64,000 nt of DNA from Octopus sinensis. Taxonomy: Eukaryota. How positions within the stretch are numbered: the first letter of the stretch is position 1; the number at the start of each line of letters is the position of its first letter. Both the position numbers and the translations under genes were made by a program. The notes under the pieces were generated by a model that had not been told where the DNA came from, ran no database searches, and saw only the letters and a program-made list of their open reading frames with translations. This document shows, one piece after another, positions 7,474 to 64,000 of the stretch. The DNA lies in assembly GCF_006345805.1 (NCBI RefSeq), contig NC_043001.1:125984001-126048000 (forward strand). The letters run 5' to 3'.

Positions 7474-8205
7474 CTCGCCAACTTGCTACCTATATTCTGC
7501 CAACTTGCTTGCCTACACTTTGCAAACTTGCTTGCCTACACTTTGCAAACTTGCTTGCCTACACTTTGCAAACTTGCTTGCCTACACTTTGCAAACTTGC
7601 TTGCCTACACTTTGCAAACTTGCTTGCCTACACTTTGCAAACTTGCTTGCCTACACTTTGCAAACTTGCTTGCCTACACTTTGCAAACTTGCTTGCCTAC
7701 ACTTTGCAAACTTGCTTGCCTACACTTTGCAAACTTGCTTGCCTACACTTTGCAAACTTGCTTGCCTACACTTTGCAAACTTGCTTGCCTACACTTTGCA
7801 AACTTGCTTGCCTACACTTTGCAAACTTGCTTGCCTACACTTTGCAAACTTGCTTGCCTACACTTTGCAAACTTGCTTGCCTACACTTTGCAAACTTGCT
7901 TGCCTAACTTTGCAACTTGCTTGCCTACACTTTGCAAACTTGCTTGCCTACACTTTGCAAACTTGCTTGCCTACACTTTGCAAACTTGCTTGCCTATACT
8001 TTGCAAACTTGCTTGCCTATACTTTGCAAACTTGCTTGCCTACACTTTGCAAACTTGCTTGCATACACTTTGCAAACTTGCTTGCCTACACTTTGCAAAC
8101 TTGCTTGCCTATACTTTGCAAACTTGCTTGCCTATACTTTGCAAACTTGCTTGCCTATACTTTGCAAACTTGCTGCCTATACTTTGCAAACTTGCTGCCT
8201 ATACT
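7474..8205. repeat. 23-bp minisatellite, about 30 copies
   Basis: Unit CCTACACTTTGCAAACTTGCTTG. It explains the 23-aa-periodic ORFs at 7441-8315. Confidence 0.95.
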
Positions 8206-34800: not shown

Positions 34801-34968
34801 TATACACTAATATTTATATACAAATATTCAATTTATATGTACATATATACAAACACCACACAGATATTAGCACAAGGTACTTGTACCATAGCACAAAGGG
34901 TATTTGTAAAAAAAAAAAGAACATTTAATTGAATAATAAAAGTGAACTAGTTGTCAGAATCCACTCAC

Positions 34969-35061
34969 CCAAAATATAACGTTGAAACCAAATACCAAGT
35001 ATTTTATGCAACAGCTCACTTCAGACCTGTCCCTCCGTGGCCGAGGTTTCCTTGGCATCAT
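34969..35061 (-). CDS. TSPAN5: First coding exon of a TspanC8 tetraspanin (TSPAN5/17-like)
   Basis: Manual translation gives MMPRKPRPRRDRSEVSCCIKYLVFGFNVIFW, matching the recalled TSPAN5 N-terminus EVSCCIKYFIFGFNVIFW. It ends at a canonical donor TGG|GTGAGT (34968-34963), and there is an in-frame TAA upstream of the ATG. The symbol marks the subfamily; exact orthology is not established. Confidence 0.9.
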
Positions 35062-35334: not shown

Positions 35335-35696
35335 CTCCTCCTCCTTTGTTTCACTTTCTCTCTCTCTCTCTCTAGCAATTCCCTTCTCTTGCCTTCACCT
35401 CCTCCTTTGTCTCACTCTAACTATCTTTGTGTCTTTCTATCTCTCTATCACTTTTGCTTTCTATCTCACTTTCTCTCTCTCTCTCTCTCTCTCTAGCAAT
35501 TCCTTTCTCTTACCTTCACCTCCTCCTTTGTCTCGCTCTATCTATCTTTGTGTCTTTCTATCTCTCTATCACTTTTGCTTCCTATCTCACTTTCTCTCTC
35601 TCTCTAGCAATTCCTTTCTCTGCCTTCACCTCCTCTTTGTCTCACTCTATCTATCTTTGTGTCTTCTATCTCTCTATCACTTTTGCTTTCTATCTC

Positions 35697-35729
<33 letters not shown>

Positions 35730-36070
35730 GCAATTCCTTTCTCTTGCCTTCACCTCCTCCTTTGTCTCACTTTATCTATCTTTGTGTCTTTCTATCTCTC
35801 TATCACTTTTGCTTCCTACCTCACTTTCTCTCTCTCTCTCTAGCAATTCCTTTCTCTTACCTCCACCTCCTCCTTTGTCTCACTCTATCTATCTTTGTGT
35901 CTTTCTATCTCTCTATCACTTTTGCTTTCTATCTCACTTTCTCTCTCTCTCTCTCTCTCTCTAGCAATTCCTTTCTCTTGCCTTCACCTCCTCCTTTGTC
36001 TCACTCTATCTATCTTTGTGTCTTTCTATCTCTCTATCACTTTTGCTTTCTATCTCACTTTTCTCTCTCT
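35335..36070. repeat. Pyrimidine-rich tandem repeat, 6 units of ~110-125 bp
   Basis: AGCAATTCC anchors at about 35374, 35495, 35606, 35730, 35842 and 35963, each preceded by a variable (CT)n. Confidence 0.9.
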
Positions 36071-36509
36071 CTCCCTACTACATTTTCTTACTCTTTCACT
36101 CATTTTCCTTTGTCTTCTCTGTCTCTATCACTCTTCTCTCTCTCAGTTTTTATTTCTCGGATACTCCTTGTTGCTTTTTTTCTTCTTCTCTTTTCATCAT
36201 TTACCCTTTCTCTTTCTCTTGCTTTTTGTTACTCTTTGACACTTCCCTCTGTTGTTTTCATATTGGTGAAATCGATTTTTTTTTTATCTAAAATATATTA
36301 TTTCTTTTTTTCTTTTAATTCTATATAAAAAAAAATATTTCTATTTCAAAATGAAATAAATCAAAATTGAATTAGTAAACCCGAAGCGAATTTTAAACAA
36401 TATTAAACAAAGGATTAGAAACTGGTGTTAATCATCAAAACATAAGAACGAGAGTATATTGAAATTTTCAGTTCATTGTCCTCTTTCTTTGTCTCACTCA
36501 CACTTTCTC

Positions 36510-51279: not shown

Positions 51280-51625
51280 TTTCCTAATATGGCTGCCGAA
51301 TCATTTTTCTTTTAACATTTCACCTCGTTTTCTATCTGATCTACATCTATGTATATATCCAAAGAAATAAACAAACGAGAATTCACTCTTTCATTTCTCA
51401 TTTGATTGAAATTTAATTTTTACCTTTTTCTTTTTTCATTTTGATAGCATTTCCTTTAATTATTCATATTTTTATACGCTCTTGTACCAAGAGTTTCTGC
51501 GTTTAATCAATTACCAAATAAAAAATAACAGAATGTCATAGGCCCGAACCGTTTTACATTGTTGTGTTGTCGAGTCACAATATTGACGATTTTTTTTTTC
51601 AAACTTTACCGAATTTTAGGTAAGT
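51280..51625 (+). promoter_or_regulatory. Candidate promoter and non-coding first exon of POLB
   Basis: Repeat-free, CpG-retaining stretch with a YY1-like AATATGGC (51286-51293) and a consensus donor TTAG|GTAAGT at 51620. The link to POLB is inferred. Confidence 0.5.
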
Positions 51626-53425
51626 AAAAAAAATACTTTTACGCATATTATTATTATCGATTAATTACGCAACAATCGCAAATAATTAAAGACCGATTTC
51701 TCTATGCACACATAGTCGTGGTGAAATTTTTTTTTACATTTGAATTAATTGCAACCCTTCCACGCACGGATTCTACTGCAATTAGAGCAAGGTAAGGGAG
51801 CAAAACATAAACACCGACCACCGATCGAACCTTTCTACTGTAGTCTTATTCGTATTAAGCACGTTTTTCTTTTTCTTCTGGTTGCACATCTAAATGTTTA
51901 ATATATCTAAAAATGCGATATAGTGATCCTTAATGTATAATTATTTATATAAATCCGTTTTAGCCGGTTTTATTATTTGGTTTCGCATCGAAATGGGTCT
52001 TCCCTTTTTTTTTGCAATATATATATATACATATATATATATGGGTTTGATAAATATAAAAGAAAAGAAAATTCAAAATGTGACTATAGGTCTATATATT
52101 TTATTTAATCGGCAGAAGTTATAAAATAACTGAAGGGGCGAAATACATACATACATACACACAGAGACACACACATACATACAGACAGACACACACACAC
52201 ACACAAACATACATACATAATACATACACACACAGACTCACAGACACACACACACACACAAACATACATACATAATACATACACACACAGACTCACAGAC
52301 ACACACACACACACAAACATACATACATAATACATACACACACAGACTCACAGACACACACACACACATACATACATACATGCATGCATGCATACATACA
52401 TACATACATACATACACACTACATACATATACTTGTTTTACAATACTATTAATATTATGGTGTGTGTGTGTGTGTATGTGTCTTGAAGGTGGCGAGCTGG
52501 CAGAATCAATAGCACGCCGGTCAAGATGCTTACCGGCATTTTGTTCACCTTTACGTCCTGAGTTCAAATCTCTCCTTGGTCGACTTTCGAGGTCGATAAA
52601 GTAAGTTCCATTTGAGCACTGGGGTCGATATAATCGACTTATCCACTCTGAACTTGCTAGCTTTGTGCTAAAATTTAAAAGCGATATTATGGTGTGTGTG
52701 TGTGTGTGTGATGCAAAGTAAGCAACAGATTCCTTTTGCATGCAAAAAAATGTGCACTTTTAAGAGTTTCGAGGAATCAAAGTCCTCGGAGGGTAGGGAG
52801 AACACTAAACATTTTTTTATACCAAAAAAAAAAAAAAAAGTCGAATAATCATGGTTGAAACATTTTAAAAAAGGATGAGAATTTAAGGTACTGTCATGAC
52901 TGAAACAAGTAAAAGATAAAAGATGACATATTAACCCTAACCCTAACTAGCATGGCTCAATGGTTAGAGCGTTGGGCTCACAATCTTGAGGTAGTGAGTT
53001 CGATTCCTGAGTTGGGTTGTGTGTTGTGTTCTTGAGCAAGACACTTTATTTCACATTGCTTCAGTTCACTCAGCTGTAGAAATGATTTGCAATTTCACTG
53101 GTGCTAAGCTGTATCGGCCCCTTTGCCTTTCCCTTGGGTAATATCAGTAGCATGGAGAGGGGAGGGGCTGGTATGCATGGGCAGCTGCTGGTCTTCCATA
53201 AACAACCTATTTCTTTATTACCCACAAGGGGCTAAACACAGAGGGGACAAACAAGGACAGACAAACGGATTAAGTCGATTGTATCGACCCCAGTGCATAA
53301 CTGGTACTTATTTAATCGACCCCGAAAGGATGAAATGCAAAGTTGACCTTGTCGGAATTTGAACTCAGAACGTAGCGGCGAAATTTTGTGGAAGTTTGTT
53401 TCTCTCTCCCTCTTTTCCTTGCTCT

Positions 53426-53464
<39 letters not shown>

Positions 53465-54348
53465 GTATGTGTGTGTATGTAGCGGGATTGCATCTAAAAA
53501 GTTCCCTTCTGTGTCGTAAGTCCAGGCAAGATTGTTTATGGAAGACTAGCACTCTCTCATGCATACCAGCCTCTCTTCTCCACACCACCAATATTATCCA
53601 AGAAGAAAGACAAAGACTGATACAGCTTGGCACCAGTGATGCTACAACTCATTTCTACAGCTGAGTGAACTGGAGCAATGTGAAATAAAGTGTCTTGCTC
53701 AAGAACACAACACACAGCCTAGTCTGGGAATCGAACTCACTAGCTCGTGATTGTGAGCCCGACACTCTAACCACTGGACCATGCACCTTCACACACATGT
53801 GCATGCACACACACACACACATTCACATGCATATGTCTGTGTGTTTAATGTCCACATAACTGTTTGACAAAAGAGACCAATAGAATAAGAATTCGACGTT
53901 ATATATCGTCATCATCAACATCATTTAATGTCCGTTGTCCATGCTGGCATGGGTTGGACGGTTTGATTGGGCTGGCATGTTGGAAGGCTGCACCAGGCCC
54001 CAGTCTGATTTGGCATGGTTTTCTACGGCTGGATGCCCTTTCTAACACCAACCACTCCGTGAGTGTAATAGGTGTTTTTATGTGCCACCGGCATGGATGC
54101 CATTTGCATGACACCGATATCTGCCACGACTGCAGTTTTGCTTGGCTTGATGGGTCTACTTCTATCAGTTCATATATATATATATATTTGGACTGATAGA
54201 AAACAATAAGAGTACTGGGTTTGATTTCTTTGGCTAAAATCTCTCAAGGTGGTGCCCCAGCATGGCCACAGTCTAATGACTAACAAGTAAAAGAAAAAGA
54301 AAACATATATATGGCGTCAATTTCTTTGGCTAAAACTGTTCCATGCAG

Positions 54349-54546
54349 CACGGATTTTTGTCAGTGAACAGGTCACGGTCTTATAGCGACGAAAATATTT
54401 TGACAAATTAAACTTAAATGTTGAAGTGAATCGAACGGCTTTTGTGTGTTTCTTAAATGGCTTACAAACACCTTCCACGCTGCAATTGTTTTCGTTCCAG
54501 CACACGATCTCAGATCAAATCACTTGCTATGCAAGTACATCTCCGT
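54349..54546 (+). mobile_element. Second full copy of the variant-hammerhead repeat
   Basis: Reverse-complement match to 28597-28792 along its length. Confidence 0.65.
54357..54407 (+). ncRNA. Variant hammerhead motif (G3-C8 core), second copy
   Basis: Reads TTTGTCA-GTGAACA-G-GTCAC(GGTCTTATA)GCGAC-GAAA-ATAT-TT-TGACAAA. Stem I is a perfect 7 bp and stem II has one mismatch. Confidence 0.6.
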
Positions 54547-54830
54547 TATTCCACGCTAATGCCCAAGAATTACTAAAACAAGTAAAAAAAAATATTAAAA
54601 AATAAAAAGATATCTTTTATCTTTTACATGTTTCAGTCATTAGCCTGTGGCCATGCTGGGGCACTGCCTTGATGAATTTTTGGTTGAATGAATCATCCCA
54701 GTACTTATTTTTTGTTAAGCTTGGTGCTTATTCTCCTAGACTCTTTGTTGAACTGTTATGGAGACATAAACCCACCAACACTAGTTGTCAATCATTGGTG
54801 GGGGACAAACAGACATAAAGACATACACAA

Positions 54831-54864
<34 letters not shown>

Positions 54865-55184
54865 GACAGGCTTCTTTCAGTTTCTGTCTACCAAATCCAC
54901 TCAACAGGCTTTAGTCAGCCCAAGGCTGTAGTAGAATACAATTACCCAAGGTGCACCATGAAGTGGGATTGAATCCTGAACCATTTGGTTGGGAAAGAAG
55001 CTTCTTCTCACACTGTCACTACTGAACACCTATACAATTAAGTACTTTTCAGTTGTTTAAATCTTTCAATGGTTCCATTGTTTTTTCTTGGGCAAGTGTC
55101 TTCAACTACAGCCTTGGGCTGACCAAAACCTTGTGAGTGAATTTGGTAGACAGAAACTGAAAGAAGCCCATCGTATATATATTC

Positions 55185-55224
<40 letters not shown>

Positions 55225-55226
<2 letters not shown>

Positions 55227-56057
55227 CATCATCATCATCATCGTTTAACGTCCGCTTTCCATGCTAGCATGGGTTGGACGGTTCAACTGGGGTCTGGGAA
55301 GCCAGAAGGCTGCACCAGGCCCAGTCTGATCTGGCAATGTTTCTACAGCTGGATGCCCTTCCTAACGCCAACCACTCCGTGAGTGTAGTGGGTGCTTTTT
55401 ATGTGCCACCGGCACAGGTGTAAGACGAGGCTGGCAAACGGCCAAGATCGGATGGTGCTTTATACGTGCCACCAGCACGGAGGCCAGACGAAGCTGGCAA
55501 CGGCCACGATTGGATGGCGCTTTTTACGTGCCACCGGCACAGGTGCAAGACGAGGCTGGCAAACGGCCAAGATCGGATGGTGCTTTTTACGTGCCACCAG
55601 CACGGAGACCAGACGAAGCTGGCAACGGCCACGATCGGATGGTGCTTTTTACGTGCCACCGGCATGGAGGCCAGTCAGGGCGGCGCTACATCCCAGGTAG
55701 AGGCCATGGGATTATGGCCTCACTTGTCCTATCAGGTCTTCTCACACACAGCATACTTCCAAAGGTCTCGGCCTCTAGTCATTTCCTCGGTGTGACCTAA
55801 AGTTCAAAGGTCGTGCTTCACCACCTCGTCCCAGGTTTTCATGGGTCTACCTCTTCCACTGGTTCCCTCAACCGCTAGGGTGTGGCACTTTTTCACACAA
55901 CTATCTTCATCCATTCTCGCCACATGACCATACCAGCGCAAACGTCTCTCTTGCACACCACAACTGATGCTTCTTAGGTCCAACTTTTCTCTCAAAGTAC
56001 TTACACTCTGTCGGGTATGAACACTGACATTACACATCCATCGGAGCATACTGACTT
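55225..56057 (-). mobile_element. Young 5'-truncated RTE LINE with modular 3'UTR
   Basis: Open frame MLRWMCNVSV...ERRLRWYGHVARM...GRGRPMKTWDEVVKHDL, five 62/63-bp 3'UTR modules, and a (GAT)n tail. Confidence 0.9.
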
Positions 56058-56183
56058 CATTTCTTATATATATAAAATATATATATATTTATATATATAT
56101 CTCATTACGCAAAAAATTCTTATAAAATATATATATATTATATATATATATAATATATATATATATAAATATATATATATATT

Positions 56184-56219
<36 letters not shown>

Positions 56220-57696
56220 ATAATAAATATTAGGGAATAAATCCAAATTTACAGGGAAAAATCAGATTTAGGATTGAATCCAATTTTATAGTAAAATATA
56301 ATATAATATTAATTAGAGACAAAACCACTATTATGCAAATCAAACAAAGAAAGACTTAATCCAATACATAAAAAATTTTATATAAATTAAATATAATTAT
56401 ATTTAATTTATATAAAATGTATATATATGTGTGTGTGTATGTATTGGTGTGTCTGTGCTTGTCTCCCTGCCATCACTTGACCCCCAATGCTGGTGTACTT
56501 ATGTCCCTGTAACTTATGTTACTTATGTTCGGTAAAAGAGCGCGATAGGTTAAGTACTGGGCTTACAAAAAAATATGTCCCGGGGGTCAATTTCTTCGAC
56601 TAAAACTCTTTAAGGCAGTGCTCCATCATGGCCACAGTCAAATGCCTGAAAGAAATAAAAGAACGTATGTATTTGAAACGCTAGTACGAGTGTATGATCA
56701 CAAGATACTTAATCATATGCACACACACACACACATGCACGCTCACACATATTTTTTTATATATTTATATGCTTTTTCTGATTGAAAGCCAAAGCTAAAC
56801 CGAAGAACAACATATAAGACCACTCCCATTTTTATAGTAAAATACCATAATATTACTATTATTAGTAGTAGTAGACATTGCATCATTTCCAAATATGGGA
56901 CATATTATGTTCTCTCAAGCACTTCTTTCCATTGTCTATTGTATCCTTCAGAGAAATAAAGTGTGTTTTCCCTGTAATATTCATTTATTCTGTGGCCATG
57001 CTGGGGCACCACCTTGAAAATTTTAGTTGAACAAATCAACAGTTGGGAAATTATTACCTCATTTGGAAACAGGTGGGGATTGGCAACAGGAAGGGCATCT
57101 GGCCATAGAAAATACTGCTTCAATATACTCTCATCTGATCCATGCAGGCATGGAAAAGTAGGCATTAAAATGATGATGATGATAATAACAGTGACAGAAA
57201 TGATGATGATGATATTGTTTTTTTATGGAAAGAAAGGAAGGTAACTGTCTATCTCAAGCTTGTAGGCTCATGAGGCCAAAGCTTATTTAGATTTTTCAAG
57301 ATATATAGGCTGAGGATACAAGATTCTCAATTGAACAGAACACCAGTCCATTGCAGAGTTAGCTCCAGATTCCACTACTACTCATTATCAGTTGAGAATA
57401 CCGGAGCAGTGTGAAATGAAGGGCCTTGTTCTAGGACACAATACATCACCTTGTCCAAGAATTGAACCCATCATCTAATGATCTTCAGTTCAACACTCTA
57501 ACCAATAGGCCATGTGCCTTCAACATAGTTTTATATATTGTTGAAAACTGAGAGGCTATTAGTTATATATATTCCTTTGTTCTTTTACTTGTTTCAGTCA
57601 TTTGACTGCGACCATGCTGGAGCACTGCCTTAAAGGGTTTTAGTCAAACAAATCAACTCCGGGACTTATTCTTTGTAAACCTAATACTTATTCTAT

Positions 57697-58007
57697 TCAT
57701 GCGGGGACAGGATGCCAAATGCACTTTTGCCGAAGTACAAGAAACCGAAGCCAAGAAACTGAACAGACACAATGCTGAACGGACATAAAGCCGAACGGAC
57801 ACAATAATAAAAAAAATGCATTCCTACCTACATAGTTTAATGACCATTTTAGCCTGTCAAATGGTCATATTGTAAGAATAAAATGATTATCATATATTTT
57901 AATTTTCATATGTCTTTTTGGCATCTTGTCCGTTCGGCTTTATGTCTGTTCGGCTTCCTGGTTTTAGCTTCTTGTCTTTCAGCAAAACTGCATCCTGTCT
58001 GTGTACC
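57697..58007. mobile_element. MITE with long imperfect TIRs inserted into a SINE
   Basis: About 80-100-bp inverted arms with repeated GCCGAACGGACATAAA-like units, and a duplicated ATTCTAT at 57690-57696 and 58008-58014. Confidence 0.65.
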
Positions 58008-59058
58008 ATTCTATCAGTCTCTTTTGCCAAACCGCTAATTTATGGGGATGTAAACATACCAACATTGGTTGTCAAGCAATGGTGGGGGGGGACAAAGACT
58101 CAAAGACACACATACAGGTATATACGATCTTCTTTCAGTTTCTGTCTACCAAATCTACTCATGAGGCTTTGGTCAGCCCAAGGCTGAACTAGAAGATACT
58201 TGACCAAGGTGCCATGCAGTAGGACTGAACTTGGAACTATGTGGTTGGGAAGCAAGCTTCTTACCACACAGCCACACCTGAAACAATGAACAAAAGTATT
58301 GTCTGAAAGACATTGTCAAAACAGGTTTCCGTTTCCATACATACAATGAAGATGATCACTGCACATATAGAGTTAGATAATGCCCTAACTTGCATGTGAA
58401 TATATAATCATGCATACCTGAGGTTTATTTAATGTTGCTGTATTGTTGTGGTAGAAAAGGGCATTCAAAAATTGTTATAAAAGAAAAGGGGTAATACTCT
58501 TTACTCTTTTTACTCTTTTACTTGTTTCAGTCATTTTTGACTGCAGCCATGCTGGAGCACCGCCTTTTAGTCAAGCAAATCGACCCCGGGACTTATTCTT
58601 TGTAAGCCCAGTACTTATTCTATCGGTCTCTTTTGCTGAATCGCTAAGTGACGGGGACATAAACACACCAGCATCAGTTGTCAAGCAATGCTTGGGGGAC
58701 AAACACAGACACACAAACACATACACACACACACATATATATATATATACATATATACGACGGGCTTCTTTCAGTTTCCGTCTACCAAATCCACTCACAA
58801 GGCATTGGTCGGCCCGGGGCTATAGCAGAAGACACTTGCCCAAGATGCCACGCAGTGGTACTGAACCCGGAACCATGTGGTTGGTTAGCAAGCTACTTAC
58901 CACACAGCCACTCCTGTAGTTTAAAAAGTTTGAAAAGCACTGAGTCAGTTGAACAACTTCATGCGTTTGTAACCTTTATTTGAAAAATATGAGTAAAATC
59001 TAACAATTATTATTATTAATTATTATTAATTATTATTATTAATAATATTTGATATTAA

Positions 59059-59079
59059 TTTTTTTTTTTTTTTTTTCAG
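59059..59079 (+). promoter_or_regulatory. Splice acceptor (poly-T tract + CAG) of a POLB 5'UTR intron
   Basis: About 18 T followed by CAG, ending 13 nt before the ATG. Confidence 0.8.
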
Positions 59080-59092
59080 ATATTGAGTTACA

Positions 59093-60103
59093 ATGAGCAA
59101 ACGTAAAAATCCTAATACCGAGAATCTGAATTCAGATTTCTGTGACTTTCTGATGGAGCTTGCCAATTATGAGAAGAATGTTACACGTGCCCTGCACAAG
59201 TACAATGTTTATCGAAAAGCTGCTGGTCTTCTTGCTAAACATCCTACGAGGATTAAGAGTGGAGAAGAAGCAAAGAGACTGAATGGTATTGGAGATAAAA
59301 TTGCTAAAAAAATTGATGAATTCATTCGTACGGGGCAACTTGAGAAGTTGAATAAAATCAGAGCTGATGACACCAGCATGGCAATCAATGAGTTGACCAA
59401 AGTATCTGGAATAGGTCCAGCTGCAGCAGCAAACTTTGCCAAAGATGGCATAAAAGATATCGAAGACCTCAGGAAGATCACTGATAAACTGAACCATCAT
59501 CAGAAAATTGGTGTGAAACATTTTGAAGACTTTGAACTGAGAATTCCTCGTGAAGAAATAACCAGTTTACGAGATGTAATATTGGCAGGGATCCAAAAAG
59601 TCGACTCCAAATACACAGCTAAAGTTTGTGGAAGTTACAGAAGAGGGGCCACTTCTTCTGGAGATATTGACGTTTTGTTAACACATCCAGATTACGTCGC
59701 TACAGATAAGAAGAAACCCGAGTTGCTGAAGGCAGTGGTAAAACATCTCACTGATAAAGGTTTGGTAACTGACACTATCTCTATGGGGGACTCGAAGTTT
59801 ATGGGGGTATGTCGGCTTCCAGAGGACGACAAAGCAATCAAGCGACGTTACCGAAGATTTGATCTCCGTTTGATCCCCCACGACCAGTATTATTGTGCGC
59901 TACTTTATTTCACCGGCAGTGATATGTTTAATAAAGACATGCGAGGTCGTGCTTTGGAAAATGGGTTTACACTTAATGAATACTGCATTCGGCCAATGGG
60001 GAGTACAGGGATTCCAGGTGAATCTCTGCCTGTGACTTCCGAAGAAGATATCTTTGATTATATTGGAATGAGATTTAAGAAACCATCAGAACGTAATTTA
60101 TAA
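59093..60103 (+). CDS. POLB: DNA polymerase beta (family X), complete 336-aa single-exon ORF
   Basis: N-terminal MSKRK, HhH motifs ([12 protein letters not shown]; SGIGPAAA), GSYRRG, catalytic GDIDVLL and RRFDLRL, YFTGS and NKDMR are all present, with no stops or frameshifts. Confidence 0.97.
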
Positions 60104-60315
60104 GTCATTGTAAGGATTTATTTTGTACACGATCATTTCATTAATTACTGATTTCTATTAATGAAGCTAGTTATTACAATCAGTTATTTCAACAGTTATT
60201 ATGAATTTTTATCAATCCACCAATAACTGATCGTGTGACTCGAATACATAATCAATGAAATTTTCATTCTATTTATTTAATTATTTATTAATTAATCGAT
60301 TGATTGATTTCATCT

Positions 60316-60321
60316 AATAAA
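60316..60321 (+). terminator. Candidate POLB polyadenylation signal
   Basis: AATAAA about 210 nt after the stop codon, in an AT-rich 3'UTR. Confidence 0.4.
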
Positions 60322-62754: not shown

Positions 62755-64000
62755 CAGGCTAAACACAGAGGGGACAAACAAGGACAGACAAAGGGCTTAA
62801 GTCGGTTACATCGACCCCAGTGCGTAACTGGTACTTAATTTATCGACCCCAAAAGGATGAAAGGCAAAGTCGACCTTGGCAGAATTTGAACTCAGAATGT
62901 AACGGCAGCCGAAATACCTATTTCTTTACTACCCACAAGGGACTAAACAGAGGGGACAAACAAGGACAGACAAAGGGCTTAAGTCGGTTACATCGACCTC
63001 ACCCCACGTCTTCCTGGGTCTACCTTTTCTACAGGTTCTGTCCACAATTAGAGATCACCACTTCCTTATGCAGCTGTCCTCACCCATATGCATCACATGA
63101 CCATACCAGTGCAGCCTTTTCTCTCTTGCACACTACATCTGATGCATAGAAAATCTGTTTCACCAAATTCCACCGACCATCTAAGCATGGTAAAGTGGAC
63201 AGTAAAATAATGATATGTTCAAACTTTGCCCCACAGATCATCGAACTGGACACCAACCACATTAATATCACCAGTTTGAGGAAGTTGGTAAAGTTTTTGG
63301 GTTTTGTCCCTCCTCTAACTAGCTTATAAAAAAATAACTAAAAAATACATGGCAGCAGCTGCATTATTTATTTCTTTACTACCCACAGGGGGCTAAACAC
63401 AGAGGGGACAAACAAGAACAGACAAAGGGCTTAAGTCGGTTACATCGACCCCAGTGTGTAACTGGTACTTAATTTATCAACCCCAAAAGGACGAAAGGCA
63501 AAGTCAACCTTGGCGGAATTTGAACTCAGAACGTAACGACAGACGAAATACCTATTTCTTTACTACCCACAAGGGGCTAAACACAGAGGGGACAAACAAG
63601 AACAGACAAAGGGCTTAAGTCGGTTACATCGACCCCAGTGCATAACTGGTACTTAATTTAACAACCCCAAAAGGACAAAAGGCAAAGTCGACCTTGGCGG
63701 AATTTGAACTCAGAACATAATGACAGACGAAATACCTATTTCTTTACTACCCACAAGGGACTAAACACAGAGGGGACAAACAAGGACAGACAAAGGGCTT
63801 AAGTTGGTTACATCGACCCCAGTGCGTAACGTACTTAATTTATCGACCCCAAAAGGATGAAAGGCAAAGTTGACCTCGGCGGAATTTGAACTCAGAACGT
63901 AATGACAGACGAAATACCTATTTCTTTACTACCCACAAGGGACTAAACACAGAGGGGACAAACAAGAACAGACAAAGGGCTTAAGTCGGTTACATTGACC
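62755..64000 (-). repeat. Head-to-tail arrays of 5'-truncated SINE family A (~183-bp units)
   Basis: Units join at GAAATACCTATTTCTTT. About 1.5 units lie at 62755-63000 and at least 3.5 units from 63370 to the window end. Confidence 0.85.

Follow-up and report, generated by a model that had tools for sequence, protein, structure and literature searches.

In human, DNA polymerase beta (POLB) is encoded by 14 exons. The 64,000-nt stretch of Octopus sinensis DNA analyzed here (the window) carries the same gene as one uninterrupted ORF, and a sequence-only reading had proposed that this ORF is a retroposed copy, with a 5′UTR intron in front of it, that either replaced or supplements an intron-containing parent. 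The questions raised by the locus are when and how POLB lost its introns, and whether the original gene was kept beside the intronless one. The features discussed below are listed in Table 1.

Table 1. Features at and around POLB, in window coordinates
Feature	Position	Strand	Basis or remark
Tetraspanin-like first coding exon, MMPRKPRPRRDRSEVSCCIKYLVFGFNVIFW then GTGAGT	34966..35061	-	Nearest recognizable coding exon upstream of POLB
Hypothetical non-coding first exon/promoter region, start undefined	51440..51619	+	Donor, CpG, conservation
Hypothetical 5′UTR intron	51620..59058	+	Inference; holds if the donor at 51619/51620 is used; 3′ end runs into the acceptor tract
Interspersed repeat, ~415 bp	58497..58915	+	Inserted in the presumed intron; 160 bp separate it from the acceptor
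Polypyrimidine tract T18 + CAG, predicted 3′ splice acceptor of the 5′UTR intron	59059..59079	+	Sequence, homology to cuttlefish
5′UTR part of the coding exon, 13 nt, with in-frame TGA	59080..59092	+	
DNA polymerase beta CDS, single exon, 336 codons + stop	59093..60103	+	ORF list, Pfam, PDB match, residue mapping
Start of the 3′UTR to the first AATAAA (60316-60321)	60104..60321	+	Sequence; the real poly(A) site may differ

The octopus enzyme and the ancestral exon structure

The ORF runs without interruption from the ATG at 59093 to the stop codon at 60101–60103 (1,011 bp, 336 aa). Four Pfam domains were recovered, all far over thresholds: the HHH_8 lyase domain (residues 12–83; E 8e-21), the DNA_pol_lambd_f fingers, the DNA_pol_B_palm (E 9e-36), and the DNA_pol_B_thumb (E 1e-20). 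Residues 1–335 align with the rat and human Pol beta structures (PDB 1bpd/1bpy) with an E-value of ~1e-137, compared with a far weaker match to Pol lambda (E ~1e-56), and the length of 336 aa corresponds to the ~335 aa expected of a Pol beta without a BRCT domain. The lyase nucleophile is conserved as K73, within IAKKIDEF (equivalent to K72), as are H35, K36, Y40, and K69. Likewise present are the catalytic aspartates D191, D193, and D257 (equivalent to D190, D192, and D256) and the dNTP/template contact residues R184, Y272, F273, N280, and R284. The intact 1,011-bp ORF with lyase and polymerase motifs described by the sequence-only reading was thereby borne out by the ORF list, Pfam, and residue mapping; it encodes a standard full-length Pol beta that is apparently functional, with gap-filling and dRP lyase activity predicted. 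The window DNA, CDS included, matches O. sinensis chromosome CM016863.1 (assembly GCA_006345805.1) at 100% identity. The O. vulgaris protein is identical to that of O. sinensis, and the O. bimaculoides orthologue is already named "DNA polymerase beta" in RefSeq. Identity is ~63% to the rat enzyme and 70–73% to the chiton, bivalve, and gastropod proteins. In length, in its four subdomains, and in its catalytic and lyase residues, octopus POLB resembles the human, rat, and mollusc enzymes (~63% identity to vertebrate), and it differs from other POLB in having one coding exon, compared with 12–13 in non-cephalopod lophotrochozoans.

This difference was established from exon maps of the chiton, clam, Aplysia, and Owenia genes, which were rebuilt with GT-AG borders so that each map matches its annotated protein at every codon; Pomacea, represented by a transcript contig only, lay outside this set. 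Specifically, POLB comprises 13 coding exons over 20 kb in the chiton Liolophura sinensis, 12 over 14 kb in the clam Mercenaria mercenaria, 13 over 18.7 kb in the gastropod Aplysia californica, and 13 over 24.7 kb in the annelid Owenia fusiformis. The internal exons are the same size in all four species (125, 75, 59, 50, 52, 55, 73, 71, 87, 65, 140, and 95 nt), with the sole exception that the 65- and 140-nt exons are fused into one in the clam, which indicates that the multi-exon gene is ancestral. Twelve intron positions are common to the chiton, gastropod, and annelid, 11 of which are also found in the clam; these 12 introns are therefore older than the mollusc-annelid split. A single-exon POLB across molluscs and other lophotrochozoans, which was to have undone the retrogene idea, is thus not what these four species have. 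Position mapping placed all 12 ancestral intron positions within the uninterrupted octopus ORF, in agreement with the earlier claim of a CDS without introns.

Distribution, descent, and selection among coleoids

An uninterrupted POLB CDS was found in O. sinensis, O. vulgaris, O. bimaculoides, Argonauta hians, and another octopod (contig L012), and also in Acanthosepion esculentum and a second decapod-like relative. L012 is a genomic Logan contig; we rejected its interpretation as an octopod transcript because it is genomic DNA that is colinear with the window across the acceptor. The cuttlefish name rests on run ERR12945500, cited as short reads of Acanthosepion esculentum (golden cuttlefish), and the Acanthosepion-type POLB (~82% identical) is present in many sequencing runs. 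The POLB of the second decapod-like relative, from an ENA assembly, is ~83% identical (sequence P0002 is from ENA ERZ21867824). Since an intronless CDS is common to octopods and cuttlefish, the loss of introns predates the octopus-cuttlefish split.

In a neighbour-joining tree, the coleoid POLB sequences grouped as a single clade, divided into octopods and decapods and placed within the mollusc POLB; none of the other, unlabelled sequences was sister to this clade. Synonymous sites are saturated between octopods and decapods. The single coleoid clade and this saturation indicate that introns were lost once, before the Octopodiformes-Decapodiformes split. The ORF is intact in every cephalopod copy, and the dN/dS check suggested by the sequence-only reading yielded 0.116 for O. 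sinensis paired with the octopod L012, 0.031 for Octopus with Argonauta, and 0.075 for the pair of decapod-type sequences. The POLB ORF is under strong purifying selection (dN/dS 0.03–0.12).

All octopod proteins among the 120 best database matches fell in one POLB cluster (90%). No second POLB-like cephalopod protein was present among these 120 matches, and the database included three annotated Octopus genomes. Based on this single cluster, the parent gene appears to have been replaced rather than supplemented.

The 5′UTR intron and its upstream exons

The strong acceptor that had been noted 13 nt before the ATG consists of a T18 tract (59059–59076) and CAG (59077–59079), followed by 13 nt (59080–59092) up to the start codon. 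These 13 nt contain an in-frame TGA at 59084–59086 (−9 to −7 from the ATG), so an upstream exon cannot add coding sequence and the ATG at 59093 is the start codon. On the (+) strand, the POLB acceptor is the one place in the 64-kb window with the pattern T≥10..YAG, while the looser pattern Y≥12-N0–1-YAG occurs nine times, which gives a chance of ~0.0035 for one lying ≤25 nt upstream of a given ATG. A polypyrimidine-(C/T)AG precedes the ATG of MSKRK by 13–23 nt in 7/7 cephalopod loci; beyond this motif, the upstream sequences of octopus, argonaut, and decapods do not align with one another. Directly before the ATG, no polypyrimidine-AG is present in chiton, clam, Aplysia, or Owenia, and the 5′UTR intron therefore looks like a cephalopod novelty.

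Use of the acceptor, whose absence from transcripts was to have counted against the retrogene idea, was observed in the cuttlefish relative. Three genomic contigs (L004–L006) read ...TTTTTTTTCTAG/GAAAGTTTGCCAACA-ATG (the slash marking the exon border) with the intron kept, while L007 and L009, from other runs, read ...CATTTAACATAG fused to GAAAGTTTGCCAACA-ATG with nothing in between. The upstream piece stops at position 278 of L004, where GTAAGT follows, giving the splice pattern AG/GTAAGT...TTTCTAG/. The 5′UTR of cuttlefish POLB is thus proven to contain a canonical GT-AG intron of 2,009 nt. Its acceptor is 15 nt upstream of the ATG, and there, at the homologous site, the spliced contigs join onto the coding exon. 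Because the homologous cuttlefish acceptor is spliced, splicing very probably also takes place at the octopus acceptor (59079). An exact-protein look-up returned no Octopus POLB transcript contig, its matches being two genome assemblies only.

Contig L007 (1–449) also contains an extra upstream junction that joins a mariner-like segment (HTH_48 ORF) onto the same short non-coding exon. This segment is possibly a transposon-derived alternative first exon, and the extra junction implies at least two alternative non-coding 5′ structures of cuttlefish POLB. Two other candidates were rejected: L008 (1–240) is a probable assembly chimera, in which an antisense signal-peptide/secreted-protein ORF is joined to the POLB exon, rather than an alternative first exon, and the shared 3′ end of L007–L009 is not a poly(A) site, since the contigs break at a genomic T-run.

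For the octopus, homology did not point to a 5′ exon: neither the cuttlefish 5′ exon nor the Argonauta and decapod upstream flanks displayed significant similarity to the window. The motif AGGTAAGT occurs once in the window with both strands counted, at 51618–51625 on the (+) strand, a count not above chance (1 seen vs 2.3 expected). This putative donor (51619/51620) lies in the AT-rich stretch where the CpG observed/expected ratio peaks (1.7–1.9; mean over the window, 0.46). Both O. vulgaris and O. bimaculoides keep the donor, but conservation does not extend to a second GT site located 170 nt beyond it. Identity to O. bimaculoides ranges from 90 to 97% upstream of the donor and from 74 to 88% just downstream. 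These features suggest, as a hypothesis only, that an octopus 5′UTR intron of ~7.5 kb starts from a first exon at 51.4–51.6 kb. A sigma-70 promoter scan was set aside as not meaningful for an animal genome.

The sequence between the tetraspanin exon and POLB has its CpG-densest spot at 55391–55674, a GC/CpG-rich tandem repeat with a period of 62/125 bp, which is repetitive and not an obvious promoter. The ~415-bp interspersed repeat near the acceptor has at least seven copies in the window (88–94% identity), with no Rfam match and no clear target-site duplication. Its insertion at 58497–58915 is present in O. vulgaris and absent from O. bimaculoides (contig L018) and the octopod L012, and is therefore recent. 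An Rfam scan of 57.5–61.5 kb also gave no match. Two further arrays were noted in the window, a 23-bp minisatellite at 7480–8205 (97% matches over 32 copies) and a tandem array of 184-bp units at 63369–64000 that runs off the window end. Past the POLB stop codon, similarity to O. bimaculoides extends for >1 kb at 85–96%. No poly(A)/A-rich relic or target-site duplication was recognized downstream of the stop; given the saturated synonymous divergence, such marks are not expected to survive.

Neighboring genes and the origin of the intronless copy

In the chiton, clam, and annelid, GFPT and POLB lie head to head with start codons 0.3–0.75 kb apart, and the first coding exon of GFPT is 7 nt long (ATGTGCG/GTAAGT). 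The GFPT positions, all on the minus strand, are 1485 in L010, 1254 in L011, and 5691 in L017. This arrangement looks like a deeply conserved bidirectional promoter pair. The neighborhood was searched by tblastn with GFPT, 4E-BP, CD9, and CD63 sequences that served as probes only; in the chiton locus with its 10-kb flanks, a GFPT exon of only 39 aa was recovered. With the GFPT probe, no GFPT exon was found in the 59 kb upstream or 4 kb downstream of octopus POLB, and GFPT exons were likewise absent from the other cephalopod POLB loci examined. However, Aplysia, which has kept all of its POLB introns, also has no GFPT first exon within 6 kb. The downstream neighbor of POLB in the chiton is eIF4E-BP (eIF4EBP), and the 4E-BP probe did not detect this gene within 10 kb downstream of octopus POLB. 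The absence of the GFPT neighborhood fits insertion at a new locus, although its loss is not specific to retroposition. The comparison of exon structure and synteny that had been proposed thus showed that the introns were lost in coleoids; for the location, a new locus fits, but Aplysia is without GFPT as well.

Upstream of octopus POLB lies a tetraspanin-like gene instead, head to head with POLB at a distance of 24 kb. The sequence-only reading had described the first intron of this gene as apparently very long. We found the first exon, while the remaining exons were not detected in the window with the CD9 and CD63 probes, which implies either a long first intron or a gene that extends beyond the window. 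Directly upstream of this exon is a CT-rich tandem array at 35349–36073 (period 121 bp, six copies, 88% matches). In O. bimaculoides, a pair of neighboring ORF pieces without introns (127 and 318 aa) lies 7.4 kb downstream of POLB (L018, 18413–20062 on the [+] strand); the pieces carry EF-Tu GTPase domains of the mitochondrial EF-Tu type, have no counterpart in the matching flanks of O. sinensis and O. vulgaris, and are probably a lineage-specific processed pseudogene.

We consider it probable that octopus POLB is an ancient retrogene replacement (an orphan retrogene), in which a copy was inserted and the parent beside GFPT was lost. A fully spliced POLB mRNA would have been reverse-transcribed and inserted in the ancestor of living coleoids, before the octopus-cuttlefish split. 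The retrocopy would have gained one or more non-coding 5′ exons, spliced to the acceptor 13–15 nt before the ATG and connecting it to a promoter several kilobases upstream. It would then have taken over, and the original POLB, with its 12–13 coding exons next to GFPT, would have been lost. The parts of this account that we infer are the mechanism (reverse transcription), the move to a new locus, the disappearance of the parent, acceptor use in Octopus, and the position of the 5′ exon. The event is ancient and common to octopods and decapods, not an Octopus novelty. Of the two outcomes named by the sequence-only reading, a retroposed copy is supported, while its persistence as a supplement is disfavored by the single octopod POLB cluster among the 120 best matches.

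The introns may instead have been erased in place, by recombination of a POLB cDNA with the original gene, which would then have stayed where it was while later coleoid rearrangements changed its neighborhood; the sole difference from retrogene replacement is whether POLB moved. An intronless CDS is equally predicted by such an erasure, but all 12 introns would be gone at once, and the new 5′UTR intron would still have to be accounted for: it ends 13–15 nt short of the ATG, at a place without a polypyrimidine-AG in chiton, clam, Aplysia, and Owenia, and is of the kind typically seen when a retrocopy recruits a promoter some distance away (PMC4772013). The 59 kb upstream of octopus POLB contain the 5′ end of a tetraspanin gene rather than any GFPT exon, which again speaks against an unmoved gene, even if GFPT synteny is broken in the intron-bearing Aplysia too and coleoid genomes and chromosomes are reported to be heavily rearranged (10.1101/2025.08.29.672809), both of which are compatible with erasure in place. 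The same is true of the missing poly(A) and target-site relics. On balance, we regard in-place erasure as unlikely.

A young or lineage-specific retrocopy, supplementing an intact multi-exon parent elsewhere in the Octopus genome, is far less plausible. Annotation can miss genes, but the intronless POLB is found in octopods, the argonaut, and cuttlefish with saturated synonymous divergence, and no second POLB-like protein of an octopod or decapod is among the 120 best matches, with three annotated Octopus genomes included. The lack of introns could in principle also reflect an ancestral state, a horizontal acquisition (e.g., from a virus), or a dead processed pseudogene; nothing else favors these readings, which are contradicted by the data and, even jointly, extremely improbable. 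Ancestral intronlessness conflicts with the 12 intron positions common to chiton, gastropod, and annelid (11 in the bivalve), and a horizontal origin conflicts with a protein that nests among mollusc POLB at 70–73% identity to chiton, bivalve, and gastropod. Against a pseudogene stand the intact ORF, the retained catalytic residues, the dN/dS of 0.03–0.12, and the spliced cuttlefish contigs.

Retrogene replacement is an established category, exemplified by amphioxus SYCP1 (Garstang & Ferrier 2018, PMC5803294), where the concept is credited to Krasnov 2005 and Ciomborowska 2013. As in amphioxus SYCP1, a gene with many exons in every outgroup is represented by a single coding exon throughout a whole clade; its parent is apparently gone, and the copy seems to have recruited neighboring regulatory DNA together with non-coding 5′ exons. 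Unlike SYCP1, the coleoid gene encodes a base-excision-repair polymerase, and the new locus, promoter source, and absence of the parent are more firmly established for SYCP1 than for coleoid POLB. Old retrogenes are mostly multi-exonic and typically gain 5′ exons that reach distal promoters (Carelli et al. 2016, PMC4772013), and mammalian retrogenes with gained 5′UTR exons or introns were described by Fablet et al. 2009 (cited in PMC4772013); the earlier statement that retrogenes often gain an upstream non-coding exon is in line with this work. Octopus POLB resembles the mammalian retrogenes in that the new exons would lie upstream and a 5′UTR intron would tie the retrocopy to a distal promoter. 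In contrast, the mammalian cases are mostly duplicates beside living parents, while octopus apparently has no POLB besides this copy. Both processes, replacement by a retrogene and acquisition of 5′UTR introns by retrogenes, are already well documented, and no new mechanism is revealed here. Our literature search turned up no earlier description of a cephalopod POLB lacking introns.

A more speculative and rather doubtful extension of retrogene replacement is that the copy originated, and displaced its parent, on the coleoid stem lineage, as part of the genome reorganization that took place there in a burst. POLB would thereby have left the conserved bidirectional GFPT-POLB promoter and come under different regulation, with alternative first exons that carry no coding sequence, of which one in cuttlefish would derive from a transposon. 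If so, POLB expression would differ from that in other molluscs, and the replacement would be a clean, rare genomic change diagnosing Coleoidea, or Cephalopoda should Nautilus share it. For cephalopod phylogeny, the intronless POLB is a discrete genomic character that is simple to score. It is also a natural experiment on how a housekeeping repair gene is rewired once the ancestral bidirectional promoter, which POLB shares with GFPT in chiton, clam, and annelid, has been lost. A core DNA-repair gene of octopuses, argonauts, and cuttlefish is thus most likely an old retrocopy that displaced the original.
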